Shown: positions 27,901 to 54,200, counted from the stretch's first letter. The stretch is 64,000 bases of DNA from Azolla caroliniana (GCA_043228905.1 JBHGNT010000017.1:17546001-17610000); one strand, 5' to 3'. Notes: generated from the sequence alone by a model not told the origin. Translations and numbers: made by a program.

Positions 27901-28003
27901 ACCTTGTACCTTAGGAATTAGAAATATCATCCCCTCTTGAAATTGCTCAAGTAAGTACCCAACATCCCATGCCTCTTTTAGCCGATCAAGCCAGATTTGG
28001 TTG
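24943..28003 (-). mobile_element. 5'-truncated L1-like LINE (ORF2 RT, zf-RVT, C-terminus), disrupted
   Basis: WRPITLLN, LDFEKAY, RQGCPLAP and YADD in 27208-27930; C-terminal WNYQAPRWLFPP; short A tail. TSD ATGTCAATCYATG at 24930-24942 and 28004-28016. Confidence 0.92.
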
Positions 28004-31401: not shown

Positions 31402-33491
31402 TTTTTGAAACTCTTCATGCAATTATATAATCCCAAGTGTTACCAATCAATTTTCTATGTAAATTAGAAGCTCCACATGGTGGAGCATAACAACTTAATG
31501 GCCAAGGAAGAAGCATTCAACGTGATTTGCATTGCTAAGAAGTGTTGATATTAATGGTTAATTCTCCTTGAGCATGATGAACCTTAGTGCCTTTGTCTAT
31601 TTGGTCAGTAAGTCTATACTAACTTGAAAAAGAGAAAGATGGATGCCAATATCGTGAATTCAAGATCATCATCTTTCATATGCTCAATGCCCTACATGTA
31701 GTTGCAAATTACTTATTGATGTTGTTCTAGTTTCGATCTATGTTGATAGTTATGATGAACCTCTCAAGTAAGGTGGATAATATCATTGATTCTCTTCACT
31801 TAATTATAAGATGTAACCCTTCATAATTATCAATATATAAGATAAACCATCAAAGTGGAACAATGAACACTTGACACTTGGCATCACCAAATGAAAATGG
31901 GAGAAGATGGTGAGATAAGTTTAAAGTAGAATGAAAGGACAAACAAAGCTAAGGACCTTGATGAGTAGATTGAAGAAGTGATGCGAGTTAAGACTAAATG
32001 AAAATGACAGTGTTATATGTTTGATACTGATAAGTGCATTGAATGAACTAGATTTACACAAATCATAAATATGTAGATGGGACATAATGCCCCATGCATT
32101 AAATGTCATAATCAATAAACTTGAGCAAATAAAATTCTTTGTTATGGCAACACAAATCATAAATATGTAGATGGATCATGGAACATAACGCCCCATGCAT
32201 TAGATGTCATCATTAATAAACTCGAGCAAATAAAATTCTTTGTTATGGCATTAGAGTATGGAGGCATATCAATGCAAAGAAAAGAAGAATGATAATTGTG
32301 TTGTGATTTTGAGGATATCTCTATCACAAGATGACATCATAGCTATAGAAGGTCAATACAAAGAACTTACAATAAATGTAGTGAAATAAAAATCATGTTG
32401 ACCAAATTCTCCAATGAAGAGAAGTTAAATGGAATGCCACACAATTTACTTCTCATGCCAATGCCAAACAATATCTAGGGCTTCATTAAGAAAACTTTTG
32501 TTGCATAAAGCTACATTATAACATGTGAGATCGGTGGTTGTATAAATCAACATGACACTAGTCAAATGGAAAAGCAAAGTGAGTACTACCAATTAAATGT
32601 GATGCACACACAAACAATAAAGTTTTAGTTGTGTATGAAATGAGTTTTTTATTTGCTCCAAATAATTTAGAGATGAAAGCCCAAATGAAAAACTAAATTC
32701 CATTCTCACAACTTGTTTAGAGATGAAGGTGTGTGTTGCATGTACTTTAAAGAATCCTCAAGTGCAACTAGTGTTTATTCATGCTGCTTACTTGTAAGAA
32801 AGTTTTTGTTTAGTTTTTCATAACAGATGAAAACAAAGGATTATGGTCATGTTACATTTAATATAACATGATATATTTTATTGTACATTCCATACATGCT
32901 ACCCTAATGCATGTAAAAAGAAAAAGTATACAAATACTAGAAGCAAGTGAAATCTCTCTTTCACACTCATGACAAATAAGATCATCATAAATATTATAGG
33001 ATTTGGGCAAGAATGGCCTGAAAGATGCAATATATTGATCTCTTTGGTCTAATTACGAAGACTAAATATCAAGATTAGATTTCTACTTGACTATGCTAAC
33101 ATTTTCACGATTTGCCTACTTCATCTCATCATAGATAGTATCAAGATTGATTTATATGCTCTATCATACAATTTAGGTTTACACGATGCTTTGAAACCAA
33201 ATCTACATGGTTATCTCTTTGAGTGTATCATTGATAATTGCATGTTTGGTGTAATTACCATATGAATAATGTGGATGTATGTTATATTATATTGGTTGAA
33301 GTCGGATTTATATTTGTCTCTTGTGATCCGTTACCATCTTACAATGCAAGTGGCGACAATGTCATGTAACTCGTAAGGACTGCCAATTTATTCTCATTAT
33401 GGTTTCATCATTCTCACATCCTCAATGTTAAAGACAAGATTAGCTTGTGCTTAAGTGTGACCATTGCGGGCACAAAAGATCATGTGCTCCT

Positions 33492-33494
<3 letters not shown>

Positions 33495-33574
<80 letters not shown>

Positions 33575-33600
33575 TACATACATACATACATACATACACG
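33495..33600. repeat. (CA)n/(TACA)n microsatellite 3' of RLK gene 1
   Basis: Directly visible. Confidence 0.95.
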
Positions 33601-33673
33601 TACACGTACATTACTGCTGACATTATTTTCTCTGGATACAATGCAAAATCTCCTTTTCTTTGGCTCACAAACA

Positions 33674-34110
33674 CTATGGAGAGGAAGGTCCAGAGCCCAA
33701 CGAAGCAGGTTCGGCAGTACAATGTGAGCTGGTATCAACATATGCAGATCCAGGTGATGCTTCCACTTCAACCTGAATTACCTTTCCTTGCTTCAGAAGA
33801 ACTAATGCATCCAGCACATCCAACATTGTTGGCCGATCTTTCGGAGATTCCTTGGTACAAGCCAATGCCAAAGCCAATACACTGTATATGCTCTCCTGGG
33901 CTGCTAATCCATCTTGGATTTCCTTCTTGAGGTCTAGATCAATCACATTCATCCAATTACCGTGTACCGCGGATTGCACCCATTTGGGTAGGCTTTTTCC
34001 GTCCGTGAAAATGTTGCTGGTCGGGCGCTGCTTTGTAATCATCTCTAATACCACCACCCCATAGCTATACACATCCACCTTGTCTGTCAATCTCTCACCA
34101 TATGCATATT
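33674..34110 (-). CDS. RLK1 exon 3 (kinase C-lobe)
   Basis: Acceptor GGCAG|AA; EYAYG..KVDVYSYGVVVLEM..DRPTM; TAG stop. Confidence 0.92.
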
Positions 34111-35966
34111 CTGCCAATTGCAAAACAGGGCAAATCATATAGAGCCATCAAAATTAATTCCTCCCTCTTTGGTACTTCACCACTAATGAACAGATGATGG
34201 AGAAGGCTGACCCCCATGACACTTTTGGAAAGGCTTGCTCCAGTTTGAAGCATTGGGAGTCAAACCTTACAATACTACACAGGTTGCAGGGGTAGACACA
34301 GATCAGACTTCTTGCATAGGTCTGCATCTCCCCTGATAAAGTGCCATGGAGTCATCAAAGAGCAAGCAGAAGAATGAGGACATCAACTCAGACCATGAGA
34401 ACCAGGAACATATCACATGAGCCATACCCACACAAAATTATGCCGTCGTGTCCTATCTGTCCAAGGACACCCAGAACACTCAGCTTACTAGATGGCATTG
34501 CAGGATGCATGACCTTGCGGTCTCCACCAGACGGCCTTACAAAACAGCTACATCCATCTGGTCATCAATTCAGCTCCTCTTTATCACTGTGAGAGTTACA
34601 CGTCTAGTGAAGTTGCTATGCTTTTTAAAGAGGGGCTACAACCTCTCATATCCATTGCATTGCTCATCGAGATGAGACTGCGCAATACATATGGGGTTAA
34701 ACTGAGAGTTGATGAGGATGAACCTGTATACATTGCCATGTGTTATTTCCCTCCTGTTATAGCACTTTCTGTTATGCCTCAGAGGAACTTCAGAGGGACT
34801 TCCAGAGCCCATTCATTCCAGTACTGGAGTGAAATAGGGATTTACTGTTGCTTTCGCAGAGCTTTCAACACAATCCCTATAGTGAGCTTGTTTAGAGGGT
34901 AACAGGATTTGGGAATTCCTTGAGAATGCCAATGGAGGATCATGGCATTTTATCAGAAAGTAGTGGGCAGAATATGAACTTCAGAGGGACTTCCACTATT
35001 GGACTGAAACGGGGATGCCTGCACTCTCCGATATTCTTTGGGCTCTATGTTGATGATCTCTCTAATTATATTGAGAGAAGAGGTATACAGCACTGAGAGG
35101 ACTAGAGAGCCGAGTCTGGACCCCCATTGCACTTCTCAAGGCATGCTTGATGAGTAGAGATTTATAGAGAAATCTTTTGTATCCATGATCTTGAGAATGA
35201 TTTGGGCTAAAGCATCCATACCCCACAATATTTCATGTTGGTATGCCCATCTGGGCCATTCTCCGAAGTTGTGGATTTCTACTATCATAGATGCTTCTGG
35301 TTGTTCCTAATAGAGTCTACAGATTTAGAGAGTCTCTCGTGAAGAGTAGCTGGCCAGCATAGCCTGTATAAAGGCAGATGATAGACTTCTTTAGAAGACC
35401 ATGCCAAGAATTCACAGAGCAAGCACAACCAAACCTCATAGAGGGATATTGCTTGACTGAGCACTTCATTTAGCATACTCTAGGCGCCTAAAGATAAAAG
35501 GATTGTCACGTAGAAGATGTAACCTGTAACAGAAGATACATCGCACTATCATCTGAGATCCGACAGCTTCCATAGGCAGTTCACAAAGGAGAACAGTCAT
35601 GCCATACAACATCATCCTCTGAGAGGGTTCATGTATTTATTTTTCTTCTGTACACTGTATCCTTCACAATATCTTTATCTTCTTGCATCTTCCCACTTCT
35701 AATGGACATGCACGCCTCTAATACACAGAAAAAATCATTCTTTAGGGTCTTCTCTAACTCTAGCCTCATACTCTCATGTTATATTAGTTCTCGTAGACCC
35801 ATCCATTCTACTTCTCCATTTTTAACTCTCCCATTACTGTTTTCTTTTTCCATTAATTCACATCAGATACTTACATCATGCACTACTTGGTAGCTGGAAC
35901 ATTGGTCTCACCAGCCATTTTCGTTTTCTTAAGACGTTAATACCACATTTCACTTCATTTCTCCCT

Positions 35967-36048
<82 letters not shown>

Positions 36049-39000
36049 CACATACTAAAGAGCAAACCCAAAGAAAACGATATAGCAGACTGGAACCTGG
36101 TGCCACGTATCCAATCGATCCTTGCATACCCGACATGGACACTACCCTATCAATGTCAGAAATGATCATCCGTGCAATACCAAAGTCACTGATATGTGCC
36201 TCAAAATCCTCATCAAGAAGAATATTGCTCGGCTTCAGGTCACAATGGAGAACACGGCCAAATCCTGTTTCCTTATGCAGATAAACCAATCCTTGTGCCA
36301 CTCCATGTGCAATATTAAATCTTTGTTCCCAACTTAACTTTGATGTATCTGTATGTAGATGCAGATCTAGGTTCCCATTTGGTATGTAATCTAGTATCAA
36401 GCATTTTGAATTTGCAGATGATAAGGTACCATATATTTTCACGAGATTTCGATGCCGAATTTGACCCAGTGTATTTGACTCTGATTGAAAACACTTTTCC
36501 ACCGCTGGACTGTTGTGGAGATTCAGTTTCTTGACAGCAACCACCATTCCACTACTTAAAACACCTTTGTAGACTGTGCTCGAGCCACCTCTACCAATAA
36601 TGTTAGCATCATTATATTTGTTTGTTGCACGAGAAATCTCTCGAGCAGAGAGTTTGATCCTTGGGTCGAATGTTACAACTTTAGTTTTCCTCCACTTTTT
36701 AACAGCAATAAAATAAGTGAGTATAGCGATTATTGCACAGATGAAAACCACAACTACGCAAATGAGTATAATTTTGGTTTTGGATATGCCATGCTCATGA
36801 GCTATGGATTCAGATGCTTTGATTGGACAACTTAATGTAAGTGGAGGCCCACATAGATCTGCATTTCCAAGATATGACTCATTCAAAAAGCTGCCAAACT
36901 GATTTCCTGTAAAAAGAAACAAATTTTACACATCACATAAAATTACATGCATAATCAAAATCTACATATAATGTAGAAAAATACAATCTATGAGATTCGT
37001 CTTGATATTCTTACTTGGGTTTATCTAGTATATTGCAAGTTATTCCAAAAACTCACATTGCACAAACTAAGTGTTGAAAACAATATATTATGCCAATGGT
37101 AAAAAATTGAAGAACGAAACACTTTTGATAGAAGTAGAACGTACCAGTTGGGATTAGCCCCGATAACTGATTGTTCGATAGATTTAGGAATGTTAGCGAT
37201 GTCAAACTTGTTAGTTGGGTAGGTATTGTACCAGTTAGCTGATTGTTCGAAAGATCCAACGATTCAAGTGTCAAAACATTTCCGAGACTATTTGGAATTA
37301 GCCCTGTTAGTAGATTTCTTGAAAGATTTAGGCTGAACAATCCAGTTAACGAGCTGATCTCATCAGGTATTGTACCAGACAGCTTATTTCCTGACAAATC
37401 TAAAGATACGACAACATCCAAAAGATAGGTGAAATATAATTCTGTACCCTTTGTAAAAACAGTCACATCATCAGTCCACAAAGTTTGGTGCGAATTAGTT
37501 TTACTTTCGTTCCTCTTGAAACCTTCCAAGTTGTATATGTCAGCTGGAATCATACCCGAGAATTGGTTGTTTGACAGTGCCAAAATCTGTAACTGATTCA
37601 AATTCCAGATCCATAAGGGAAGAACACCCTCTAGATTGTTAAAACCAACACTTAAAACCCTTAGATTCTTTAGTTGGCCCCAACCGTCAGGGAGAGGCCC
37701 ACTGAACTGATTACGTGAAAAATCTATTACCACCAAACTGCTGTCATTCACAAAGGAAGCAGGAAGGCTTCCATTAAAGCTGTTGTGTGCAAGTGATAGT
37801 GAATGTAGCTGGCGCAGTGACGTAAACTGATTTGGAACCTCCCCACTCAAAGAGTTATTGGAAAGTTTCAGCCATTGTAATTGAATACAATTGGCCAACT
37901 CAACTGGTAAACCACCTGAGAAATTGTTCATGGCCAAGTCTAAATAAACTATCTTTGTGAGTCTCCCTAATGAGGAAGGAATAGGCCCTTCAAGAAGGTT
38001 GGGATTAACCTCGAAATATAGAAGGTTTACAAGATTCCCTAACTCGGAGGGAAGGAATCCTGTGAAGTGGTTATTGCCAAGGTACAGCTTAGTTAAAGCA
38101 GTCATATCTCCTAGCTCCACTGGAATGTTCCCAGTCAAGTTATTGCTAAAGATAATGAAGATACTTAAGTTTTGAAGTTTACTTATCTCAACAGGCAGTT
38201 CACCGATGAGCCTATTGGAATAGAGATGTAGTTCTTTCAAGCTTATCATATCTCCGATCTCCCAAGGCAACTCTCCAGAAAGTTGGTTTTGCTGAGCGTA
38301 TAGGTATTGGAGGTTAGTGAAGTTTCCAATCTCCTTGGGGAAGCTTCCATTGAGATGGTTTTGAAATATGTCTAATATCTCAAGGCTACGAAGGCGGCAA
38401 AGTTCTGGTGGGATCACCCCATCAAGGTTGTTAAGCATGAGGAAAAGATGAATGAGCTTATCGAGCTTTCCCAGTTCAGGAGGTATGATTCCAATCAAGT
38501 TATTTTGACCCAAATACATGTATCTTAGATTGGTAAGGTTTCCAAGTTCAGGAGGTAAGGTACCAGTCAAAATCGGCATGTTGTGGAGTTGAAGTGTTTC
38601 GAGGGCAGTGAGACGGCCGAGGGAAGGTGGGATTGACCCACCCAAATTGCTGTTCTTGCTTAAGTCAAGCCAAATGAGGGATGTACAATTGCCGATTGAA
38701 GAAGGAATGGATCCAGATAGCAAATTCTCTTTGAAATCTAGATGGGTTAATGATGACAATTGACCTAATTGTTGAGGTATGGACCCAGTGAGGCTGTTCA
38801 TGGAGAGGTTAAGGTATAATAGGAAGGTGAGGTTGGAGAGGTAAGGGGATATAGTTCCTGTAAGGTTGCTTTGCCTGAGGTCTAGTGAGATCACTCTTCT
38901 TGTTCCATTGTGATTCCTGTTATTATTGTTGCAAGTGACCCCTGCCCAACTGGTGTTGCAAGGGAAGGAATCAGGTGAGGAGTTCCATGATCTGAGTCTA

Positions 39001-39194
39001 TGAAGTGGGTCTCCATTGATGCTAGATTTGAAGCTCAGTAGAGCTTCTTTGTCTATGATTTCTTCCTCTGGCATGGACAATATGGACAGGAATGGGCATG
39101 ACATAATGAGGAATAGCAAGAACAGGGGAGAAGTGGGGGTACCTGGGACTACTGAACTCGCCATGCGCTGTTTGGTTATCATCACCATCATCAT
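33674..39194 (-). CDS. LRR receptor-like kinase 1, join(39194-37145, 36906-36097, 34110-33674), ~1098 aa; island-domain ectodomain plus non-RD kinase
   Basis: Signal peptide, LRRNT (DKEALLSFK..W..C..WAGVTC), 19+4 LRRs, GNADLCG cap, TM helix. Kinase motifs GRGGSSTVYKG, VAVKKL, HCDLKPSN, DFG, GSIGYVAPEY. GT-AG phase-1 introns keep the frame. The start may be 39164. Confidence 0.93.
34840..35090 (+). mobile_element. Degenerate LINE RT fragment in RLK1 intron 2
   Basis: CCFRRAFNTIP and GLKRGCLHSPIFFGLYVDDL resemble the DFxKAFD and GVKQGCPLSP..F.LY.DDL RT motifs. Confidence 0.6.
35963..36045. repeat. (CT)n(CA)n microsatellite in RLK1 intron 2
   Basis: Directly visible. Confidence 0.95.
36097..36906 (-). 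CDS. RLK1 exon 2 (LRR C-cap, TM, kinase subdomains I-VIII)
   Basis: Acceptor TTTTACAG|GA; donor CCAG|GTT. Confidence 0.92.
37145..39194 (-). CDS. RLK1 exon 1 (signal peptide and LRR ectodomain)
   Basis: Within ORF 37053-39416; donor ACTG|GTACGT. Confidence 0.92.
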
Positions 39195-39556
39195 CACCAG
39201 TTTGCATCTTCTTTCTTCCCATCCTTTACTAAATTTCCTCTTTCTGTCTGTCTGTCTGCTACAGGAGTGTACTCTTCTTTCTTCTTTTGGGGTGAAGGTA
39301 CACAAGTATTTGTTCAGCATGTGCAATTTCTGCATGTATGGGATACATACATACGTTACTACGTATATATACATACATGCATACATACATACAATACATA
39401 CAATCATTACATGCATTCATACATACATATATACATACATACATACATTCATATATACCTATACATACATTCATTCATATATACCTATACATACATGCAT
39501 GCATATATGCATACATATATATATACCACTACACATACATAGGTAGAGAAGGCAAC

Positions 39557-39837
39557 CATAGTACGTCAATTTCATGTTCGTCTAGCATAACATTCGTTTT
39601 CCTACGTTGGAAAACGAATGCGAATGTTATTCAAACATTCTTGTGTTTTTGTTTTTTTCCCATTTTTTAATGTTTTGGTTTTTGTGTTTTTTCTATTTTT
39701 TAGGCTTATTTACCTCATAATAAATAGTTAATCCAAAAGTATGGTATTTATCATTCTTTGAGGGTGTTTTCCTTACGAGAATGATAGAAACATTCTCGAC
39801 TGCGAATGCACGAATGGTACGTATGGTTCATACTATG
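39557..39837 (-). mobile_element. hAT-type MITE, family 2 copy 2, upstream of RLK1
   Basis: Reverse complement of 28402-28670. TIR CATAGTA/TACTATG; TSD AAGGCAAC / A(T)AGGCAAC. Confidence 0.85.
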
Positions 39838-41570
39838 ATAGGCAACTATTAAGTTTTAGCATTTGTGTTTACATGCAATTCTATTGTCGAGGCATCAGAA
39901 AACAACAATCGGATGCCACTCGCCAAATCTCTTATAAGTACCTCCAGATGATATGCACTATAAGGCATTTAATGACCCTATTTGTCTTTCAATGGAATAG
40001 TGTACAAAAAGAAGCATGTATGTACTTGAGCCGAATCCACTTCAACTTATGGCTGAACTTAATCATGACTTTCTATATGTACAACCTTTGTACGAGATGG
40101 TAAATGGGAATGTCAACCACATTGTGGTATTTGCCTCCACTATGCATTTGTCTTACATACATTGCACACCTGATTTGCTTTTGTCTTACATGCATTCCAC
40201 ACGTTTTGCTGCTTTAGGTGATAGCGTAGAGAAAGTGCCAGTGAATGATGAGACTATGTATTTTTAACGACATGTAACAAGTGTGTACCATCATTTTAAC
40301 CGTGAATTCACCCAAGGAGCACCATTTGCTACCTCTGTGTGTTCTCACGACACAATGATATATCTTTGTGTAGTGAGAACACTTCGTCATTGTGCTTAAT
40401 ATCCTTCTTTAAATTAGGCCTTGTTACATAGATATGGCAAGGCTTCGCTCGTGACCCAAGACTCATTCATATACAAATAATTAAGTTCTACAAGGCCTAG
40501 TTAACAAAGGTTGTTGGGGTAGGATAGTTGGTGGAAATGTGTGTCTTATGGTTTTGAACATATATGGCTTGTGCCTAAATCTCCCATTCATGGCCTTCCA
40601 ACAGTTCTTAGGGCTATAATAAAGGTTGTACACTAATTACAAAACTATATACCATGATGATCTAACAATAAGCATTTGTGTCCTGCTGTCGTGATGTGGT
40701 GTGTACAATGGGAGAAAAAAATAAAAAATGCAAGTTTTACTATAAGTTAAGAATCTGGTTGAAATCAATTTTGGAAGAAAGGTAGAAAGAAGAAAATTAA
40801 GTACACTGAAAAAATAACTCAACGATAAGCGCTAACCAAGGGTGTGAAACTTGCTAAAGGTAATGGAGGGGAAAAGATGGACAAGCTATAATGCATGAAT
40901 GAGGATAGAACAACATTTGATGAATACATATACATTGACATACATTTTGAGAAACCTTGGCATCCACGGAAGGATTTGGACAAGTGCATGCTCAAAAGGA
41001 AAATCAATGGTGAATGCTAAAAGCGGTGATTCTATTTTAAATATTCGACAAGAGCGCATTTAGACATTTTTAGGAAATAAGCACCCATGCTTTTTCAACA
41101 AAAATAATCACAGGTACCAAATCACACAAACATTTGGGAGGCTCTCAACAATGAAGTCGACATGTCATCAATCATAGTCACCATGCGAAAACTCTAGGAC
41201 ATGCCTCTTGCAATCTTCTTTCTTTTAATTTCTTGACCCTATCCAAACGGGTTTAACAATTCATGTAATTAGATTGACTCAAGTCATTTGTGGCATCCAT
41301 AGACTATAACCACATTAATTCTTCCTGTATTTTCATATTATATTTCTAGATTTTATATTGAATGTGCTTTGTTTCATGTTTGTAAGTTCCATGAAAATTA
41401 AAACTGCCATTCTCCTTGTATTTTGTTCTCGAAAATCTATATGATATTCTAGCTTGAGTTTACAAGCAATTTGCGTAAGGAAAGAAACCTTGAGGGATTA
41501 GATTTTGCACACATTTGTGCAACACTCGAGCTTTGGTGAAAACAAAGAGTTGGACTTCACATTTACCTTA

Positions 41571-41644
41571 AACGAGCGATGGGATTCGAACCCACATTTC
41601 CAGATTTCATAAAATCTAGTGCCCTCCCATTAGGCAACGCTCGA
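41571..41644 (-). other. tRNA-like cloverleaf with a 10-nt anticodon loop
   Basis: CGAGCG/CGCTCG acceptor, GCCT/GGGC D stem, CTAGA/TCTGG anticodon stem, GTGGG-TTCGAAT-CCCAT T arm. Confidence 0.6.
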
Positions 41645-42339
41645 ACTCGTGATGAGCCTAACCATCAAGGGTCCCTAATATGGAACTGACATGTGGACTT
41701 ACTTATCCACATAATAGGACGCTAATGTTTCCATACAACAGAAGCATACCCAATACCAGACCTACAAGTGACATGCTTGGAAGTGGTGGATGAGTGTTGC
41801 ATCTATCACGCACTGCAAGAAAAAAACATCTAATATTCACCTTCTAGTAAATACAAAAAAGTAATAATGGGAGAGAGAATATAACATGGGGAAATCTTCT
41901 TTAGAAAACAAAAGATAGAGAAAAGTTGAAACCTTTCCAAGACTTGTTATATGTTCACAATAACATACAATATGATACCAGTTACAACATTGATACACAC
42001 ATTATGTATAACATGGAAAAGCTATGTTGCTCCCACTGGATGCACATGCACATGCACACTCCCATCTGAACGGCATAGAGCTAGTGGAATCACCTAGGTG
42101 CTTTTTTATTACGAAGTGCCTAAGTACAACTATGAAGGAGCATGATATAACAATGGAGGTGGAAGCAACATGGGTGATATTTTATTGCGGAACGCCTAAG
42201 CACAACTATGGAGCATGATACAACAAGGGAGGTAGAAGCTCATGTTCTCTTACACAAAGAATACACATACACATACACATACACATACATAAACAAGCCG
42301 TGTTCCCTTGGATAATTTTGGGTACCCTCTTTTTCTGAC

Positions 42340-42785
42340 TCATAAAGATGAAAGCGATGAATTCCCGGAGCCCATCGAAGTAGATTCACTAATAAAATTT
42401 GAGCAGGCATCCACATATGCGGATCCAAGTGATGGTTCCACTTGGACCTGAATTACCTTTCCTTGCTTCAGAAGAACTAAAGCATCGAGCACATCCAACA
42501 TTGTTGGCCGATCTTTCGGAGATTCCTTGGCACAAGACAATGCCAAAGCCAATACAGTGTATATGGTCTCGTGGTCCGCAAATCCAGCTTGGATTTCCTT
42601 CTTGAGGTCTGGATCAATCACATCCATCCAATTCCCATGTAAAGCAGATTGCACCCATTTGGGTAGGGTTTTCCCGTCCATGAAAATGTTGCTCGTCGGA
42701 CGCCGCTTTGTAATCATCTCTAATACCACCACCCCATAGCTATACACATCCACCTTTTCAGTCAATCTCTCCCCATATGCATATT
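42340..42785 (-). CDS. RLK2 exon 3 (kinase C-lobe)
   Basis: Acceptor GGCAG|AA; EYAYG..DVYSYG..DRPTM; TGA stop. Confidence 0.92.
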
Positions 42786-45700
42786 CTGCCAATTACAAAA
42801 CAGGGCAAATCATATAGAGACATCAAAATTAATTCCAATCTCAATCTCTCTCTTTCTCTCCTTTGGGACTTAACCACTAATGAACAGATGATGGAGAAGG
42901 CTGACCCAGGACACACTTTGGCAAAGGCTCACTCGAGCATCAAAAGCATAGGGAATCAAACTTATATTACCACATGGGATGTAACCATAGAGCAAGTAGA
43001 AGAATACGAACACCGATGGAGATTGTGAGTCTCAGGATACAATGCACATGGATCTTACCCAAACAAAATCATGGAGATCGTTGCTCCTCATGTCCGATCC
43101 ATTCAAGCACTCCAAGAACCCTAAGCTACTAGATGGCCTTGCAGGATGTAGGGGTTGAATGCATGACCTCATGGTCTTCACCAAACAACCTTACAAACCA
43201 GCTACATCCATTTGGTCATAGATCCAGCTCTTCTTGATTGTTATCGTTTTGTCTCCAGTAACGATATGAGATCTATGGTATGAGCTTGAGGTTTGCAATA
43301 TGGAATTATAATGAGCCACTAGAATTGGATGTGGACATGTTCTTTCGAGAATGCATTAAAGTTACTATGCTTTCCAAAGAGAAGTTACAACCTCTCATAT
43401 CCATTGCATTGCTCGTTGAGATGATACTGCTGAACACAAGTGGGGTTAGAATAAGAGTAGATAAGGAGGGACCTCAGTAAGTTGCCACGTTTTATTTCCC
43501 TCCTAGCATTTCCTGTTATGCCTCTCCCAAGGGACAATCGCCAGAGTATATCTTATTTTAGATAAGAATATCTAGGAGTTTTTGAGAGATGGAGAGGTGA
43601 TTGTTTCAATACTCACTGTCATAGGCATTATCACATCATGCATATATAGCTTATGTACATATTGTTCTATATCTTCATCAGTGAATTCGCCGATTGTATC
43701 TTCCTTTTTGCCCTGGAGTTGTCTCCATGCTAACTTTGGTTGTTGCAACCTGTCCTCTGGTTTCACAAACATGCAAATGCATTGTGGCACCTACAGAAAA
43801 CACAGTCTTGGTGGAAAAACCGGCTTACAAGCATATGGAGCTCTGGTCTTTCACTTCAGCTATGGAGATGCCTTTTGAATGTGCTGCCGACTGGGTCAAA
43901 TCTTCAAAAGCGATCGATAGCCTCGCTGCATTGTGCAAGATGTGGTGGAAGATTAGACACAGTCCCGCACTTATTATGGACTTGCTCATTCACTACAACA
44001 TTTGTACAAAGACAAGTGCATCTCTTTCTCACAAATTTCCAGGCCAAAGGTTTGGGAAACACTTTTGGCTATTTGGACAAATTCCGTGTGCCCTACTTGG
44101 CAAAGCCTATTTTCTCCAATGGACAAGATTTTGGGCACTCTGGACCATTTAGATAGCCTGCAATACTAAGGTCTTTGATCGAAACCAACTACATGAAGTT
44201 AGCTTCTTTAAGCAATCCCTCAAGCAATCTCTATTTGATTGTCCGCAACTTAGAGACATTACACTACAAATTTACACTCTTTACTTTGAGCGCTTTTAAG
44301 CTCTTTAGTGTCTAATCGACACGTGTATATTTCTCTTTATTCTTTGTGGGTTTTCACCTCACTTTGAGGTTTCCCACTAGTTATAAAAGTGTTACTAAAG
44401 AAAAAAAAAACATTTGCATTTCTTCTTTTCTTGCATTTTATATTATTGCCTCTTCTTTCTCCTTGCCAGTATTCAATATTGATACATTGTTAGGGCTTTC
44501 GCATTTTTACCTTCTGCAAGCTTCAACATTTATAGATGACCCTTGCATTCTTCATCAAACCAAGCATTTCATGGAAACTAAGCATTCGATGTCCACCTAC
44601 ATGTACACTAAAACATTGATACTCTACCTTGAGAATGACATCCTTTAATTGCTCCGAATTTGTTTTCACATCTTTACTAAAGGGAGAGGTTCGTGACATA
44701 ACTCTCAAGCTCATTTACAAATAGATTATCTTTTCCATAGCAAGGTCACATAATGTACCTCATTTCATTTTGTACTCTAATGCATTGGCCAATGTGTGAG
44801 TTTTTCAATGCAATCTGAAAGTACAATGTGTTAGAGCTAGATACTAATGTACGCATGAGATAAGGAAATAAGAGATAGATAGATAAGAGAGGAGAGTGAA
44901 AGAAGGGCGTCGATCCACCCGACCACCCCCAAGTGAAGGGATCAAGACGAACTCGAGCCTCGATCGGCGTCCCATACCACCGTTGTGGCGTTGCGTTGTA
45001 CCTGGTACTAACACACTCGCTTCAAGAGTTGATCACCATGAGGACAGAGTCTCAACGTAGTCGATAATGTGTCAAATGAGGGTAACTAGGCCTCATATTT
45101 ATAGCCAGACCTAAGGCCCCCAGGCAAGTTCACACTTGGCCTTAATGGGTTGTCTCAATCCCAAGGATTAAAAGTAATCCTTCCCTTCTTTACACTCTCA
45201 TTTAACCCCTCACACTTCATCCACATGTATAGAATATTATGGGATATTATATGGTCATGCCCGTAACACAATGGGTGACAATGGGCCAACATTAAATCAC
45301 TTCACAATGGATGCATCACATTCTTTACATAGTCGAATAGCTTCCTCCTTCTGAGAATGGAACACGTCAAAACATGCCATTGAAAATGCATGAGTGTCAT
45401 ACAATGTGCAAGTTTGTGCAATTATGCATGTGTATGAGAAGCCTACCGTAATCTGACATAATACCATCTTCTGACTCTCTCTCATACACTCAGATATGCA
45501 TGTATATAAGAACAAACCAAAGCAAAACAATATAGACTGCATACCTGGTGCCACATATCCAATGGATCCTTGCATACTCGACATAGAAACATCCCTATCA
45601 ATTTCAGAATTTATCATCCGTGCAATACCAAAGTCACTGATATGTGCCCCGAAATCCTCATCAAGAAGAATATTGCTTGGCTTCAGGTCACAATGGAGAA

Positions 45701-48700
45701 CGCGGCCAAATCCCGTTTCCTTATGCAGATAAACCAATCCTTGTGCCACTCCATGTGCAATATTAAATCTTTGTTCCCAACTTAACTTAAATGTATGTGT
45801 GTATAGATGCAAATCTAGGTTTCCATTTGGTATGTAATCCAATATCAAGCATTTCAAATTTGCAGATGATAAGGTACCAATTATTTTCACGAGATTTCGA
45901 TGCCGAATTTGACCTAGAGTATTTGATTCTGATACAAAACATTTTTCCACCTCTGGACTGTTGTGGAGATTCAGTCTCTTGACAGCAATCACCATTCCAC
46001 TACTTAAAACGCCTTTGTAGACTGTGCTCGAGCCACCTCTACCAATAATGTTAGCATCATTATAATTGTTTGTTGCACGAGAAATCTCTCGAGCAGAGAG
46101 TTTGATCCTTCGGTCGAATGTTACAACTTTAGTTTTCCTCCACTTTTTAGCAGCAACTAAAAAAGCGAGTATAGCAATTATTGCACAGATGAAAACCACT
46201 ACACAAATGATTATGATTTTGGTTTTGGATATGCCATGCTCATCAGCTATGGATTCGGACACTTTGAGTGAACAACTTAACGTAAGTGGAGGCCCACAGA
46301 GATCTGCATTTCCAAGGTATGACTCATTCAAAAAGCTGCCAAACTGATTTCCTGTAAAAGAAAACATCTTTTACATATAACACAAAAAATTATGTGCATA
46401 AATATAAATTTCTAAATCTTTTACATATAGCAATAGTCTCCAGCTATGGTCTAAAAAATTCCTCTTGATATTCTCACAATCTATTAAAAAAAAAAGTACC
46501 TTCAGAAATTCACATTCCACAACCCAAGTGTTGAAAGTGATATATCAAGCCAATGCTAACATCAGAATATCACTTTACACAACCCAAGAGTTGAAAATGA
46601 TTTATCAAGCCAATCCTAACAAATTGATGAATGAAAGCAAATCTGCCGTGATAGAAGTACAACATACCTGTTGGGATTGCCCCTGATAACTGATTGTTTG
46701 ATAGATTCAGAAAAGTTAGAGATGTCAAAGCTGTTAGTTGGGTAGGTATTGCACCACTAAGCTGATTGTTTGAAAGATCCAATGATTCAAGTGTCAGAAC
46801 ATTTCCGAGACTATTTGGAATTGGGCCTGTTAGTAGATTTCTCGAAAGATTTAGGCTGAACAATCCGGTCAATGAGCCAATCTCAATAGGTATGATACCA
46901 GACAGCTTATTCCCCGACAAATCCAAAGATATGATAACATCTAAAATATATGTGAAGTCTAATTGTGTACCCTTTGCATCAACAGTCACATAATCACTCC
47001 ACAAAGTTTCGTCCGAATTGATTTTACTTTCATTCGTCTTAAAACCCTCCAAGTTGTGTATGTCAGCCGGTATCGTACCTGAGAGCCGGTTGTTTGACAG
47101 CGCCAATATCTGCAACTGATTCAAATTCCAGACCCATAAGGGAAGAACACCCTCTAGGTTGTTATAACCAACACTTAAAACCCTTAGATTCTTCAGTTGA
47201 CCCCAACTGTCAGGCAGAGACCCACCAAACTGATTACGTGAAAAATCTAGTACCACCAAACTGCTCTCATTCACAAAGGAGGCAGGAAGGCTTCCATTAA
47301 AGCTGTTGTTTGCAAGTGATAATGAGTGTAACTGGCGCAGAGACGTGAATTGATTTGGAAACTCCCCACTCAAAGAGTTACTGGAAAGTTTGAGCCACTG
47401 TAACTCTACACAATTGGCCAACTCAACAGGTATACCACCTGAGAAATTGTTGATGGACAAGTCCAAATAAACTAGCTTTGTGAGTCTCCCTAATGTGGCA
47501 GGGATGGGCCCTTCAAGTAAGTTGGGACTAGCATCGAAATATACCAGGTTTACAAGATTTCCTAATTCTGGGGGTAGGAATCCTGTGAATAGGTTGTAAC
47601 CAAGGTACATCTGAGTTAAAGTAGTCATATTTCCTAGCTCCGCCGGAATGTTCCCACTGAACCCATTGTTACGGAGAACGAAGAGACTCAAGTTCCGAAG
47701 CTTAGTTATCTCAATGGGCACTTCACCGGTAAACTTATTGTTAAAGAGTTGCAGTACTTCCAAGCTTCTCATGTCTCCGATCTCCCGGGGCAACTCTCCA
47801 GAAAGATCGTTCTGCTGAACATATAGGTATTGGAGGTTAGTGAGGTTTCCAATTTCCTTGGGTAGGCTTCCATTGAGATGGTTTTGAAATACGTTCAATG
47901 TCTCAAGGCTACGAAGATGCCCGAGTTCTGGTGGGATAACCCCACCAAGGTTGTTGATCATGAGGAAAAGTTGAAGGAGCTTACTGAGATTACCGAGCTC
48001 TGGAGGTATGCTTCCAGTCAAGTTATTTTGACCCAAATACATGTACTTTAGATTGGTAAGGTTTCCAAGCTCCGGGGGTATGGTACCCGTCAAATTCGGC
48101 AGGTTGTGGAGTTGAAGCATTTCAAGAGCAGCGAGACGGCCGAGGGAAGGTGGGATTGACCCGAACACATCGATGTTCTTGCTTAAATCAAGCCAGAAAA
48201 GGGATGTACAATTGCCAATTGAAGCAGGTATGGGCCCAGATAGCAAATTCTCTTTGAAATCTAGATGGGTTAGTGATGACAATTGACCTAACTGTTCAGG
48301 TATGGAGCCAGTGAGGCCATTGAGGGAGAGGTTAAGGTATGTTAGGAAGGTGAGGTTGGAGAGGTAAGGGGATATGGTTCCTGTAAGGTTGCTTTGCCTG
48401 AGGTCTAGCGAGGTCACTCTGCTGGTTCCATTCTGATTTGTGGTGTTATTGTTGCAAGTGACCCCTGCCCAGCTGCTGTTGCAAGGGAAGGAATCAGGTG
48501 AAGTGCTCCATGAGCTTAATAGACGGAGTGGGTCACCATTGATGCTAGCTTTGAAGCTCAGTAGAGCTTCTTTGTCTATGGTTTCTTCCTCTGCTACGGA
48601 CAATGTGCACAGGAATGGGCATGAAATGATGAGGAATAGAAAGAACAGGGGAGATGGGAAGATACCTGGGATAACTGAACCAGCCGTGCTGTGTTCTGCC

Positions 48701-48723
48701 ATCATCATCATCATCATCATCAT
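42340..48723 (-). CDS. LRR receptor-like kinase 2 (tandem paralogue), join(48723-46668, 46351-45545, 42785-42340), ~1102 aa
   Basis: Same architecture and intron positions as RLK1, HCDLKPSN non-RD kinase, open exons and canonical splice sites. The start lies within an (ATG)8 run. Confidence 0.93.
43790..44410 (+). mobile_element. 3' fragment of an L1-like LINE in RLK2 intron 2
   Basis: zf-RVT-like CARCGGRLDTVPHLLWTC, with a poly-A at ~44397-44410. Boundaries approximate. Confidence 0.7.
44829..45268 (-). mobile_element. Solo LTR (440 bp) in RLK2 intron 2
   Basis: TGTTA...TAACA termini with a perfect 5-bp TSD CAATG. CTATAAATA on the minus strand at ~45096-45104. Confidence 0.88.
45545..46351 (-). 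CDS. RLK2 exon 2 (C-cap, TM, kinase subdomains I-VIII)
   Basis: Acceptor TTTTACAG|GA; donor CCAG|GTATGC. Confidence 0.92.
46668..48723 (-). CDS. RLK2 exon 1 (signal peptide and LRR ectodomain)
   Basis: Within ORF 46570-48849; donor ACAG|GTATGT. Confidence 0.92.
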
Positions 48724-51210: not shown

Positions 51211-54200
51211 TGTTGAGAGACAAGCTCAACATCAGCCGGATCGGCTGAAGAAGCCGAGGACCGGATCGGTTGGGACCGATTGGTTAGGCCGAATGCGTAA
51301 ACCGGTACGCAGACCGGTGTGTAGATAGGGCCGGATCGGTGCGGAAACCGGGAGGCCGTTAGGAAAGATATTCCGTGAGGAATATGTTTGGGAGTTAGTG
51401 TAGGAGCTCTCAATGAGCATTGAAGTACTGTCAGTACTTTTGTCAGTCCTTCTAGGACTTGTATAAAAGTGTTCATTGAACACACATATGTATAGAGTCG
51501 TGAATAGAGGTTGAATATAGTTCTTGTGTGTTCTCTCTCTCACTCTCTCTGTCTCTCCCGCGTATACTGCGTAAGCTCAAGCTCTCCATTAAACCTGAGT
51601 TTTCTTCCTTCTGTTCGGTCTTCACACTTGCTTCCGCACGCTACTTTTTACATGGTATCAGAGCGCGAGGGTTGAGAACCTCTCTGCAGCCGACACAGCT
51701 TGACGAAGAAGAACCAGAAGAACGATGGATAGAGGCATGACGAGCTCGCTTCCAACAGAGAAGCTCGACAGAACCAACTACGCGTCTTGGTCCTACAAGA
51801 TGCACCAGTACCTGCTCGGGCACGGCTACTGGAGTTACGTCGAAGGAGCTAATGACGCGGCACCCGAATCGACACACAGAGACTTCCCGTCGTGGGAGCA
51901 ATCGGCGAGCAGGGTATTATACTGCTTCGCGTCGTGTGTGGGGGAACAACTATTGAGCTATGTTCGGGATGCAAAGACGCTGAAGGGTGCGTGGGAAAAT
52001 CTGAAGAAGATTTTCGCCGTGAGCACCATAGCCAGGAAGCTTGAGCTCCGACAAGAGTTGAGCAACCTACGACAACGTGACTTGTCAGTGGCGGACTATA
52101 CCTCGAAGATCAAGGATATCGGCGACTCCCTCGCCTCCATAGAGGTGAACATCGAGGAGAGCGAGATGGTCCAGATTTGTCTCGGAGGTTTGGCGTCGAA
52201 GTTCGGAGCGTTCCGAACGGCTGTGTGTACCCGGGAGAATACGCCGTCCTTTTTCGACTTACAGTCAATGCTCCTGGTAGAGGAGAACCACGCGGGTGCG
52301 TCTACAAGCACGCACACCGACGGCAGAATGCTGTACACGGAGAGAGATAGGCCCCGTGGACGTGGAGGACGAGGCGAGTCGGCACGCAATGGAGGCGGCC
52401 GACGAGATCAAGGAAAAAGGCACCAAAGTGATGCCGACAGCAACTCCGGACCCTCCGGAAACAGGGGGAGTCGAAGCGATGAGAACCGGCAAGGGAAGGC
52501 CATCGCGGAGTGTTGGTACTGTGGCAAGAAAGGCCACAGGGAAAGTGAGTGCTGGAAGAAGCGCGCCGATTCGGAGAGAACCGGTTCCGGAAACGGCTCC
52601 GGACATACCGACAAGGGAAATCGGCAACGATTGCACTACGCCGAAGACTCCGGGAGAGCCGGAGAAGGGTTTGCCTTCGTGACGAGACACGAAGCAAACT
52701 CAATGAAACGAACCACCCCGAGATCTGACGAGGTGTGGTACGTAGACTCCGGCGCGTCAAACCACATGACGAGCCATAAGGAGTGGTTCTCGTACCTTGA
52801 AAAACCGATACAACCTGGAGTAGTCGCAACTGGAGACGACACTCCGCATCCGATCGCGAATGTCGGAGAAGTTCCCCTTAGCCATGTCGGGTAGAAAGGG
52901 AAACTCATGAACATGCTGCACGTTCCGACAATCACGAAGAACTTGGTCTCGGTCGGACAGATCGTCGACCAAGGGATGGAGGTTCGGTTTACACACCTCG
53001 GGTGCTTCATTGAGGAAGAAGGCCGTGTGATTGCGCAAGGGCACAGAGACGGGAGGATGTTCATCCTCGACTCCACTGACGGCGACACCGCAATGTTCGC
53101 GAAGGGACAAAAAACTGAGTCGGACATCGACTTGTGGCACAAGCGGATAGGCCACGTCAACTACCAGCGGCTTCAAGATCTGCAATCGAAATAGGTAGTG
53201 TTCAGATTGCCCAAATTTAGTGGCCGAAAGGCACAAATTTGTGAAGCCTGCCAGCTCGGGAAGCAACACCGACTTCCTTTCCCCAACGAGCGAAACCGGA
53301 GCCGGAACAAGCTCGACCTTATACACTCCGATGTATGGGGGCCAACACAAAACGTTAGTCTTGGCGGGAGCCGATATTTCGTCTCCTTCATCGACGACCA
53401 CACACGGCACACGTGGATCTACCTCATTGAGAGGAAGAGCGAAGTTTTCGACTGCTTTCGGGACCTCAAAGGGTTCGTGGAAACGGAAACGGGACGCAAG
53501 ATCAAGTGCCTACGGTCGGATGGCGGGAAAGAGTACTTTTCCGGTCAATTCAACGGTTATCTACAACAAATGGGAATTCGGCGCGAATTCAGTTGTAGAT
53601 ACACGCCGTAGCAGAATGGCGTGGCCGAGAGGAAGAATCGGTCAGTTGTGGAAGCGGCACGGGCAATGCTGGAGGAGAAGAGCTTGCCCAAGTTCTACTG
53701 GGCCGAGGCGGTAAGGACTGCGGTATACATCCAGAACCGGATCGGAGACAAAGTGTCGGCGCACGAGCTATATTTCGAAACGAAGCCGAACTTGCGACAC
53801 TTGAGGGTGTTCGGTAGCATTGCGTATGTGCATGTACCGAAGGAGAAAAGGAGGAAGCTGGACGCAAAGGCCGAGAAATGCATCTTGGTCGGTTACTTGG
53901 ACGAGCAGAAGGGTTATAAGTGCTATAACCCTCGCACCAAACAAGCGTGTGTTAGCCGCGACGTTGTGTTTGACGAGTCCGCGTCCTGGTACCAGCCCTC
54001 GACTCCGAACCCCGACTCCAATCCGAGCTCTGACGATGAGGTCAGCGAGGCCGAGATGCCCCCGGATGAGCCTGAAATCGAGACCCGCGAAGAGAGTCCG
54101 ATTTCACTCCGTTTAAGTGGACCGATTGGACGACTAAGTCGGTACGACCAGTCCGATGAAGAGCCGACGAGTAGTGGAGACTCGGGCGTGCATTCCCCGC

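Follow-up and report, generated by a model that had tools for sequence, protein, structure and literature searches.

Two tandem receptor kinase genes

The window, a stretch of 64,000 nucleotides from Azolla caroliniana (GCA_043228905.1 JBHGNT010000017.1:17546001-17610000), contains two intact tandem paralogues, genes A and B, which lie on the minus strand and comprise three exons each. ORF, translation and Pfam analyses located them where an earlier note, made from the sequence alone, had claimed two adjacent genes. Exon 1 of gene A (37145..39194, delimited by ORF and translation, Pfam and an LRR parser) starts with Met at 39194 or 39164 and encodes a signal peptide, an LRRNT cap, 19 LRRs, an island and most of the four terminal LRRs. 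LRRs 1-19 occupy 37521..38894 (repeat starts 24-25 residues apart, from residue 91 to residue 525) and are followed by the 36-aa island (37413..37520), with W-x8-KG and K-x5-F motifs, and by the last four LRRs, or C3 region (37146..37412), with Glu at position 2 of the penultimate LRR. The donor site at 37145/37144 (g/gtacg) opens intron 1 (36907..37144; 238 nt, phase 1, GT..AG), which lies within the Gly codon of IPTG/NQF. Exon 2 (36097..36906) encodes an RLP-type cap (NQFGSF..SYLGN..LCGPPL), the outer juxtamembrane segment, the TM helix (36701-36772) and kinase subdomains I-VIII, including the HCD of HCDLKPSN (36239-36247). Intron 2 (34111..36096; 1986 nt, phase 1, GT..AG) lies in the Glu codon of APE, and exon 3 (33674..34110) encodes kinase subdomains IX-XI, the C-terminal tail and the stop codon. 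A (TG)n(AG)n microsatellite is found at the start of intron 2.

Gene B is organized in the same way. Its exon 1 (46668..48723) encodes the signal peptide, LRRNT, LRRs 1-19 (47044-48417, LRR parser), the 36-aa island (46936-47043) with the same W-x8-KG and K-x5-F motifs, and C3 (46669-46935); eight ATG codons are present at the beginning of this exon. Intron 1 (46352..46667; 316 nt, phase 1, GT..AG) again splits the Gly codon of IPTG/NQF, and exon 2 (45545..46351) encodes the cap, the TM helix (46149-46217) and kinase subdomains I-VIII with HCDLKPSN (HCD at 45687-45695). Intron 2 (42786..45544; 2759 nt, phase 1, GT..AG), also located in the Glu codon of APE, harbors an antisense zf-RVT retroelement fragment at 43740-44156, and exon 3 (42340..42785) encodes subdomains IX-XI, the tail and the stop codon.

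According to a simple LRR parser, 19 LRRs are succeeded in both genes by a step of 60 residues (24 residues plus the 36-aa island) and exactly four LRRs; the GNQF cap, the TM helix and the HCDLKPSN kinase come next, and six homologues have the same layout of 19 LRRs, 36-aa island and four LRRs. The Pfam matches (LRRNT_2, LRR families and Pkinase) each fall in the expected exon of both genes. The parser, Pfam and translation thus bear out the domain order described earlier, from the 19 LRRs through the island, exactly four LRRs and IPTGNQF to the TM helix and kinase. The HCD positions match exactly and intron 1 is indeed of phase 1 in both genes; the islands are present, but lie 9 nt away from the figures given before.

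To the extent that RNA-like public assemblies can show it, both genes are transcribed and spliced. Contigs from public runs skip exactly 36907-37144 and 34111-36096, corresponding to introns 1 and 2 of gene A: the 238-nt skip occurs in contigs of runs X1 and X4, the joint 34110->36097 is present in X4 with a near-identical joint in X3, and a spliced junction of the gene B type is read by a loose end of run X3 at 37147. These contigs are 90-99% identical to the window, come from runs that are only presumed to be RNA, and possibly represent alleles, paralogues or related species. Homologous proteins, including annotated fern proteins and transcript-length Logan contigs, are uninterrupted over both exon junctions from the LRRs through the kinase, which, together with the contig joints, upholds the proposed splicing of exon 1 to exon 2 and of exon 2 to exon 3. 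The same data bear on the suspicion of an annotation artefact, in which each gene would really be two, an RLP gene and, behind it, an independent gene for a kinase only. A Met-initiated ORF is called on exon 2 by itself, both in the window and in Logan contig P0480; however, exon 1 has neither a stop codon nor a TM helix ahead of the donor site, intron 1 splits the last LRR and a Gly codon, the contigs connect all three exons, and the Logan contigs and fern proteins run unbroken from LRRs to kinase, making an artefact hardly credible. The dN/dS ratio between the two copies (0.26-0.40) indicates purifying selection; at exposed LRR positions it is 0.30, equal to other positions, and the diversifying selection common in PRRs was not seen in this pair.

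An LRR-XII kinase joined to an RLP-type module

The cytoplasmic part of both proteins is a non-RD kinase that belongs to the LRR-XII clade (FLS2/EFR/XA21), and its coding sequence contains a XII-type intron. The catalytic residues of the kinase are complete in both genes (VAVK, alpha-C Glu, DFG and APE), and the catalytic loop is non-RD (HCD). In a careful ML tree of 60 kinases, in which subgroup labels are names from public sources, the window kinases fall inside the LRR-XII superclade (support 98/85), within a fern clade supported at 100/99; a quick kinase tree also places them with XII, and the best solved-structure match is FLS2. The earlier designation of the kinase as FLS2-like is therefore confirmed by the phylogeny as well as by the loop and the structural match. 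In position and phase, intron 2 matches the sole intron of a Xa21-like gene from Carex rostrata, the one reference gene compared. Besides the HCDLKPSN kinase and the phase-1 intron in the APE Glu codon, the fern family shares with LRR-RLK XII an RLK-type N-terminal cap and tandem arrays. In contrast, typical XII receptors have a G-x-F-x-N cap and lack both the island at the -4 LRR position and GxQF/QxxS, whereas the fern family has an additional intron in the last LRR. Subgroups are delimited by kinase phylogeny, and an island-less ectodomain is a usual but not a defining trait of XII.

The LRR-RLK Xb receptors (BRI1/BRL, PSKR1 and PSY1R) are likewise receptor kinases with ID+4LRR that recruit SERK through C3, as is proposed for the fern proteins, but their kinases are RD and form a separate clade, and <5% of their islands carry Yx8KG or Kx5Y. 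A single clade of the fern kinases and BRL2, the one Xb kinase in the tree, was rejected (dlnL 51, p-AU 3e-5). The BRL2 island is 68 aa long and contains neither motif.

The ectodomain bears an RLP module consisting of the 36-aa island at the -4 LRR position, an RLP-type C3 and a G-x-Q-F / SYLGN..LCG.PL cap. The W-x8-KG and K-x5-F motifs of the window genes correspond to Y-x8-KG and K-x5-Y in Ceratopteris and Adiantum, and [YW]x8KG and Kx5[YF] are common to most of 35 RLPs; the published frequencies of Yx8KG and Kx5Y are about 75-77% in RLPs vs under 4-5% in Xb islands (PMC10834447, PMC12686451, also the sources for the SOBIR1 features and SERK docking considered below). GxQ[FL] is found in 6/6 fern proteins and 49% of RLPs vs 0/44 XII and 0/59 HRD proteins, and QxxT/S in 67% of fern, 74% of RLP, 7% of XII and 3% of HRD proteins; fern C3 combines QxxS with Glu at position 2 of the penultimate LRR. 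The C3 of gene A scores 110.7 bits on the RLP profile vs 92.4 on the XII profile, and C3 with the cap scores 139-141 vs 110-116 bits, the margins of RLP over XII/HRD being +15 to +29 bits. In cross-validation the profiles were correct for 34/34 and 44/44 sequences, with no XII sequence misclassified. An AlphaFold2 model for gene A predicts that the KG turn of the island sits within a beta-hairpin (strands 159-168 and 171-180, mean pLDDT 90.6) and has its highest query-normalised TM-score (0.87) and identity (38%) to RXEG1. The RLP-type signatures claimed for the island and last four LRRs are thus evident in motifs and profiles and extend to the cap; an ML tree of C3 and cap decides neither affinity, as a sister relation to XII-type C3 is not rejected (p-AU 0.42).

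This latter result, as well as the source data of Ngou et al. 2024, in which 874 of 19,626 XII receptors have an island of some kind at another place in the ectodomain, indicating that insertions do arise in XII, would agree with convergence, i.e., an insertion gained independently at the -4 LRR of a XII receptor, with likeness to RLPs due to chance or to shared SERK-docking constraints. Such an origin is improbable given the profile margins, the lack of misclassified XII sequences and the coincidence of independent characters: the -4 LRR position, [YW]x8KG, Kx5[YF], the penultimate-LRR Glu, GxQF/QxxS, the SYLGN..LCG.PL cap and the GxxxGxxxG TM helix of orthologues.

A similarity to RLPs over the whole ectodomain, as had been supposed, is not supported. 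The N-terminal cap is RLK-type by profile (XII 95 and HRD 91 vs RLP 59-71 bits) and has a single Cys in the fern family vs CC in most RLPs. Toward the membrane, GxxxG(xxxG) TM motifs are present in 15/15 RLPs vs 0/14 XII receptors; among six orthologues of the window genes, GxxxG occurs in 5/6, GxxxGxxxG in 3/6 and an acidic outer juxtamembrane in 0/6. In the window genes GxxxG is absent from both TM helices, and the outer juxtamembrane has a net charge of +1 and 0. Since RLP-like traits extend past intron 1 into the cap encoded by exon 2 and into the TM helix of most orthologues, the suggested exon shuffling at intron 1 is unsupported, and any junction must lie after the TM helix. Overall, the fern family resembles ID+4LRR LRR-RLPs (RXEG1, RLP23, Cf-9 and EIX2) in its island with Y-x8-KG and K-x5-Y type motifs at -4 LRR, the penultimate-LRR Glu, QxxT/S, the cap consensus and the GxxxG(xxxG) helix of orthologues, but differs in having introns and, in place of the short RLP tail, a full kinase (Pkinase, exons 2 and 3), as well as in the features of the juxtamembrane and N-terminal cap noted above.

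Distribution and origin of the architecture

Genes A and B are members of a lineage of LRR receptor kinases that is conserved in ferns. The same architecture is present in Ceratopteris, two Adiantum species and Logan assemblies, often in tandem. The conifer Cryptomeria japonica has an annotated XII kinase of a related kind that also bears an island, and a restriction to seed-free plants is therefore not supported. In the Cryptomeria protein no more than three LRRs are clear behind the island, and the profiles do not discriminate its C3 (64.3, 63.5 and 60.4 bits). Searches that were non-exhaustive for bryophytes and lycophytes found no member in either group. The combination is rare: the source data of Ngou et al. 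2024 list 36 of 19,626 LRR-RLK-XII receptors with ID+4LRR. The suggestion that such receptors exist unremarked in other seed-free plants is correct insofar as they are present in other ferns and not discussed by Ngou et al. 2024, but they had already been counted in that survey.

As a tentative explanation, with odds below even, recombination in an early euphyllophyte or early fern put an RLP island-C3-cap-TM module onto an LRR-XII kinase, and the hybrid was kept and amplified in tandem. The discordant profiles along one protein (N-cap RLK-type, C3 and cap RLP-type by +20 to +29 bits, kinase XII) argue for such a chimera, as does the TM motif shared by RLPs and most orthologues but not by XII, and the scarcity of ID+4LRR among XII receptors fits a rare event. 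However, two junctions would be needed, one within the LRR array and one after the TM helix, or else an RLP donor with an RLK-type N-cap; intron 1 matches no plausible junction, the C3 tree is indecisive, and no RLP close to the fern ectodomain was found, all non-family matches being 33-39% identical.

Alternatively, and doubtfully, the ancestor of LRR-XII, perhaps shared with LRR-RLPs, already had ID+4LRR, which ferns and a conifer lineage retained, implying loss of the island in the main XII lineages and of the kinase in RLPs. The kinase tree is compatible with retention in that, at the base of XII, the island-bearing XII kinases of ferns, those of Cryptomeria and core XIIa diverge as an unresolved trichotomy, but it does not recover the fern and conifer forms as one clade. 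Intron 1 has the same site and phase in locus L001 and in a distant relative (P0486/L002), suggesting that the gene structure is old; an RLK-type N-terminal cap is expected if no RLP was ever involved, and the published model allows either an RLK or an RLP as ancestor (PMC10834447). On the other hand, the island is missing throughout the FLS2-like and core XIIa lineages, which comprise thousands of genes, so that repeated or early loss would be required; the Cryptomeria C3 is left undecided by the profiles and shows only three clear LRRs, and the non-exhaustive searches of bryophytes and lycophytes gave no member. It is unlikely that the island-bearing XII kinases of ferns (and the conifer) are relics of an ancestral receptor type from which RLPs arose through kinase loss and island-less XII receptors through island loss; if true, this would tie immune RLPs to immune XII kinases and not, as in the current model, only to developmental Xb kinases.

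Proposed signalling and significance

We interpret genes A and B, with a probability of roughly 0.7, as intact, spliced tandem paralogues that combine a XII kinase, an RLK-type N-cap and an RLP-type module in a SERK-driven PRR acting without SOBIR1. Family membership, the sole ground for an immune role, makes a function as pattern-recognition receptors likely. By this scheme, the ligand would be bound on the inner face of the LRRs and by the N-terminal portion of the island. SERK/BAK1 would dock, by analogy with RXEG1 and RLP23, in a groove formed by the hairpin in the C-terminal portion of the island together with the final LRRs (QxxS, penultimate-LRR Glu). The SERK kinase would then activate the non-RD XII kinase carried by the receptor itself, in the manner of EFR or FLS2, and the SOBIR1 adaptor would not be required. 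The window genes lack the acidic juxtamembrane and GxxxG of RLP-SOBIR1 use, which fits self-signalling without proving it. They appear to have lost the GxxxG that most orthologues retain, and given its presence in 5/6 orthologues, an association with SOBIR1 within the fern family is possible.

In the current model, an ancestral ectodomain with ID+C3 gave rise both to the immune RLPs, which lack a kinase, and to the developmental Xb kinases, and the model leaves open whether the ancestor carried a kinase (Ngou et al. 2024; 2026 review PMC13006823). A lineage with an RLP-type island, C3 and TM and an immune XII kinase represents a third branch, undiscussed in this model, and is useful for asking how the RLP and LRR-XII receptor classes relate; it also shows that the PRRs of ferns include architectures which angiosperms lack or have only very rarely. 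The family also provides a test case for direct activation of a non-RD kinase by RLP-type ligand and SERK docking without SOBIR1, for the decay of the SOBIR1 interface (GxxxG) after kinase attachment, as the apparent loss in the window copies would exemplify, and for the design of RLP-kinase fusions to move recognition between plants. A comparable combination of an RLP-type ectodomain with a receptor-kinase cytoplasmic domain has been engineered from RLP23 with the TM and cytosolic parts of BRI1 (Ngou et al. 2024); that laboratory construct carries an Xb kinase, whereas the fern lineage is natural, conserved and equipped with a XII kinase.

Structure and integrity of the gene pair

Genes A and B are tandem paralogues on the minus strand, with three exons each. 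In gene A, exon 1 runs from a Met codon at 39194 or 39164 to 37145 and matches the LRRNT_2 and LRR families of Pfam, and exons 2 (36906-36097) and 3 (34110-33674) match Pkinase. The corresponding exons of gene B (48723-46668, 46351-45545 and 42785-42340) match the same families. All four introns are of phase 1 with GT..AG borders; intron 1 lies in the last LRR, within the Gly codon of IPTG|NQF, and intron 2 in the kinase, within the Glu codon of APE. Our LRR parser agrees with the earlier note in counting 19 LRRs, an island (36 residues) and exactly four more LRRs (C3) in both genes, and the HCDLKPSN catalytic loop is present at 36239-36247 and 45687-45695. Protein identity between the two genes is 80% for exon 1, 89% for exon 2 and 82% for exon 3 (~86% at the DNA level). 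The start codon assignment is putative: the predicted start of gene B (48700-48723) is a trinucleotide run of eight consecutive ATG codons (MMMMMMMM), and its counterpart in gene A reads MMMVM.

Within the window, there is no third copy of the receptor gene, and the remainder consists of retroelement debris (copia gag/pol, reverse transcriptase, integrase). Retrotransposon remnants flanking the pair on either side (5463-6554, 27208-27930, 51725-54451 and 62588-63931) include gag-pre-integrase, RVT_1, copia-type gag and Pol beta-barrel, SH3_retrovirus and integrase core domains, and the GC content reaches 0.54-0.60 at 10-16 kb and 52-56 kb. A fragment of a zf-RVT (reverse transcriptase zinc-binding) ORF lies antisense in intron 2 of gene B (43740-44156, plus strand) and accounts for some of the 770 nt by which this intron is longer than its gene A counterpart. 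Long dinucleotide microsatellites occur in and around gene A (35965-36060, 33480-33620 and 39270-39560), including a (TG)n(AG)n run immediately past the exon 2 donor and CA/TA-rich runs both upstream of the start and immediately after the stop codon.

Both exon junctions are continuous in homologous proteins (..IPKGNQF.. and ..GYVAPEYAYG..), namely in P0001 from Ceratopteris richardii and in three proteins from Logan contigs (P0002, P0014 and P0255), whose length of 4-5 kb leaves no room for introns. The exon 1-exon 2 junction, for which the earlier note had called for transcript evidence, is further supported by contigs from three public runs, the RNA nature of which is a guess: they cover the exons, leave intron 2 empty and contain joins at which precisely 34111-36096 and 36907-37144 are missing. 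These contigs are 90-99% identical to the window and so may stem from alleles, paralogues or close relatives; two of the gene A microsatellite places were skipped as repeats in this comparison. One loose contig end carries the gene B form of the junction, and in a genomic Logan contig from a close relative (L001) the two introns interrupt the same codons in the same phase. Genes A and B have intact reading frames, with a dN/dS ratio between them of 0.26-0.40; no excess was found at exposed LRR positions, and we therefore make no claim of diversifying selection. Judging from sequence, we regard both genes as functional, with splicing as predicted. Every search, tree and fold was run on single exons or homologues.

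An LRR-XII kinase behind an RLP-type island

In a careful maximum likelihood tree of 60 kinase domains, built in addition to a quick tree, the window kinase exons fall within a clade of fern proteins (support 100/99), which is nested in a 98/85 clade with FLS2-named and Xa21/EFR/At3g47570-named sequences, all carrying the HCD loop. In this and other comparisons, reference labels are the names that the sources give to the homologues, not the canonical Arabidopsis or rice FLS2, EFR, XA21, BRI1, PSKR1 and RLP23. MIK2-like, XI and XIII kinases and the sole Xb kinase, a BRL2 homologue, are placed elsewhere in the tree, and a tree constrained to unite BRL2 with the fern clade is worse by 51 log-likelihood units (p-AU 3e-5). 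Among solved structures, the top kinase match is FLS2, slightly above BRI1 (134 vs 129 bits); the same type of search with the LRR part is dominated by repeat matches. The position and phase of intron 2 are those of the single intron of an Xa21-like gene from Carex rostrata, which has no intron at the intron 1 site. All catalytic residues are present, with Cys replacing the RD Arg. Since the tree placement, the rejection of BRL2, the FLS2 structure match and the Carex intron agree, the window kinase is, as read from its sequence, an LRR-XII kinase by descent, in line with the non-RD FLS2-like assignment of the earlier note. Congruent placement of both domains in an island-bearing subfamily such as Xb was thus not observed.

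The ectodomain has a different affinity in its membrane-proximal part. The marks of RLPs comprise an island ahead of the final four LRRs (ID+4LRR), the island motifs Y-x8-KG and/or K-x5-Y (present in ~75-77% of RLPs and under 4-5% of Xb), a penultimate LRR with Glu at position 2, QxxT/S within the last LRR and, for SOBIR1, an acidic outer juxtamembrane region and GxxxG in the TM helix (Ngou et al. 2024; Snoeck et al. 2025). The window genes possess W-x8-KG, K-x5-F, the penultimate-LRR Glu (LESLDLS) and NQFGS, and their Ceratopteris and Adiantum orthologues have a true Y-x8-KG. In our own sample, GxQ[FL] was found in 6/6 fern sequences and 49% of RLPs, compared with 0/44 XII-like and 0/59 HRD kinases; for QxxT/S, the respective values are 67%, 74%, 7% and 3%.

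A separate phylogeny of C3 and the cap (maximum likelihood, 108 columns) did not separate RLP from XII affinity: the fern clade lies among RLPs and BRL2, and its placement as sister to XII-type C3 regions is not rejected (AU test, p 0.42). This tree was not used as evidence of RLP affinity, and discrete characters and cross-validated profiles were used instead. Profiles of the C3 and cap for RLPs, XII and other RLKs classed correctly 34/34 held-out RLP and 44/44 held-out XII sequences, and they favour RLP by 20-29 bits for the fern regions and by 15-18 bits for the window C3 taken alone; the cap encoded by exon 2 is RLP-type as well (16.4 vs 6.7 bits). The 269 residues at the end of exon 1 were modelled with AlphaFold2 (mean pLDDT 90.6); in the model, the C-terminal half of the island forms a beta-hairpin around the KG turn, the same element as described in RXEG1 and RLP23. 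Of the solved structures, RXEG1 ranks first both in query-normalised TM-score (0.87) and in identity (38%), although plant LRR ectodomains all match well. GxxxG or GxxxGxxxG is present in the TM helices of 5/6 orthologues, 15/15 RLPs and 0/14 XII receptors; genes A and B are without it, and we conclude that these two copies have lost it. No member of the fern family has an acidic juxtamembrane region. Convergence on this set of traits is considered highly improbable.

The N-terminal cap and first LRRs are of RLK type (XII ~95, HRD ~91 and RLP 59-71 bits), with a single Cys ahead of W-x-G-V-x-C, whereas most RLPs have CC there. Therefore, the proposal of an RLP-type ectodomain joined to an immune kinase stands for the island, C3, cap and kinase, but not for the N-terminal cap. 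The suggestion that intron 1 is compatible with exon shuffling was not sustained, because RLP-like traits continue into the cap encoded by exon 2 and, in 5/6 orthologues, into the TM helix, and the intron is no evidence for it; any graft would have its downstream junction inside exon 2, past the TM helix but ahead of the kinase. One candidate origin, with a probability of roughly one in three, is a graft that gave an XII receptor an island-to-TM module of RLP type.

Distribution and earlier counts

The best hits of the window genes belong to Ceratopteris and Adiantum (55-66% identity). The summed-score rankings of word and profile searches favour many-LRR or multi-kinase fused proteins and were set aside; homologues were rescored by the best single domain against a cap-to-kinase profile, and architectures were parsed separately. 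By this measure, members of the family reach 688-739 bits, compared with 541 bits for a partial neighbour gene in Ceratopteris, 377-393 bits for three more distant proteins and at most 319 bits for ordinary XII kinases. Similar architectures, as the earlier note had suspected for other seed-free plants, were found in Ceratopteris (KP509_28G063500 and 063700) and Adiantum (GOP47_0030186 and 0030189), and these gene neighbours suggest that tandem arrays are the rule. Another Ceratopteris richardii locus on chromosome 19, KP509_19G050800 (P0497), has a 2,503-aa model with three tandem copies fused, each with ~15 LRRs, a 36-aa island, four LRRs and an HCD kinase (HCDLKPRN). This fusion is an annotation error that hides the fern family in protein-based surveys.

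One of the distant proteins comes from a conifer, Cryptomeria japonica (XP_059068627.1; P0496 / P0463, GLJ50174.1), and has an island of 54 aa, followed by three clear LRRs, a cap with GGQF and an HCD kinase of XII type. Its third LRR runs straight into the cap in a gene spanning 16.4 kb, and for this reason an exon piece with the fourth LRR is probably missing from the gene model. In the kinase tree it groups with a Logan protein (95/92), and this pair, the fern clade and core XIIa form a trichotomy; the profiles do not discriminate between classes for the Cryptomeria C3. Bryophyte, lycophyte or angiosperm members were not found in our searches, which were not exhaustive. In 29/74 sampled HCD (XII-like) kinases, the LRR parser reported repeats that are irregularly spaced 11 LRRs ahead of the C-terminal end, which may represent a conserved irregular repeat of XII ectodomains or a parser artefact.

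Published source data list 36 ID+4LRR members among 19,626 LRR-RLK-XII receptors (874 with an island), 2,070 among 4,463 LRR-RLK-Xb and 14,700 among 26,435 LRR-RLPs (Ngou et al. 2024, Fig. 4d). The only statement on this point in the text is that Xb accounts for 94.7% of ID+4LRR kinases (Ngou et al. 2024). An XII lineage with an RLP-type island is not discussed there, in the 2026 review (PMC13006823), in Man et al. 2020 or in the other literature searched, and public records name the family proteins 'hypothetical' or, for Cryptomeria, 'LRR receptor kinase BAK1-like'. Thus, XII receptors with ID+4LRR have been counted before but are not described in the literature searched. Alternatively to the graft, early XII lineages may have kept ID+4LRR from an ancestor, which would link RLPs to XII kinases; this origin is only somewhat less likely than the graft.

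Predicted signalling

Each gene encodes an intact secreted LRR ectodomain that includes an island and C3, followed by a single TM helix and a kinase. By analogy with RXEG1, RLP23, PSKR1 and EFR, ligand binding would involve the surface of the LRRs together with the island's N-terminal part, a SERK co-receptor would be recruited by the hairpin of the island and the last two LRRs, and the SERK kinase would activate the receptor's own non-RD kinase, with downstream signalling presumably via RLCK-VII kinases. SOBIR1 should be dispensable for these receptors, since they carry their own kinase, and the loss of GxxxG from genes A and B is consistent with relaxed selection on the SOBIR1 interface. The motif is kept in most orthologues, so that SOBIR1 may still be bound in the fern family.
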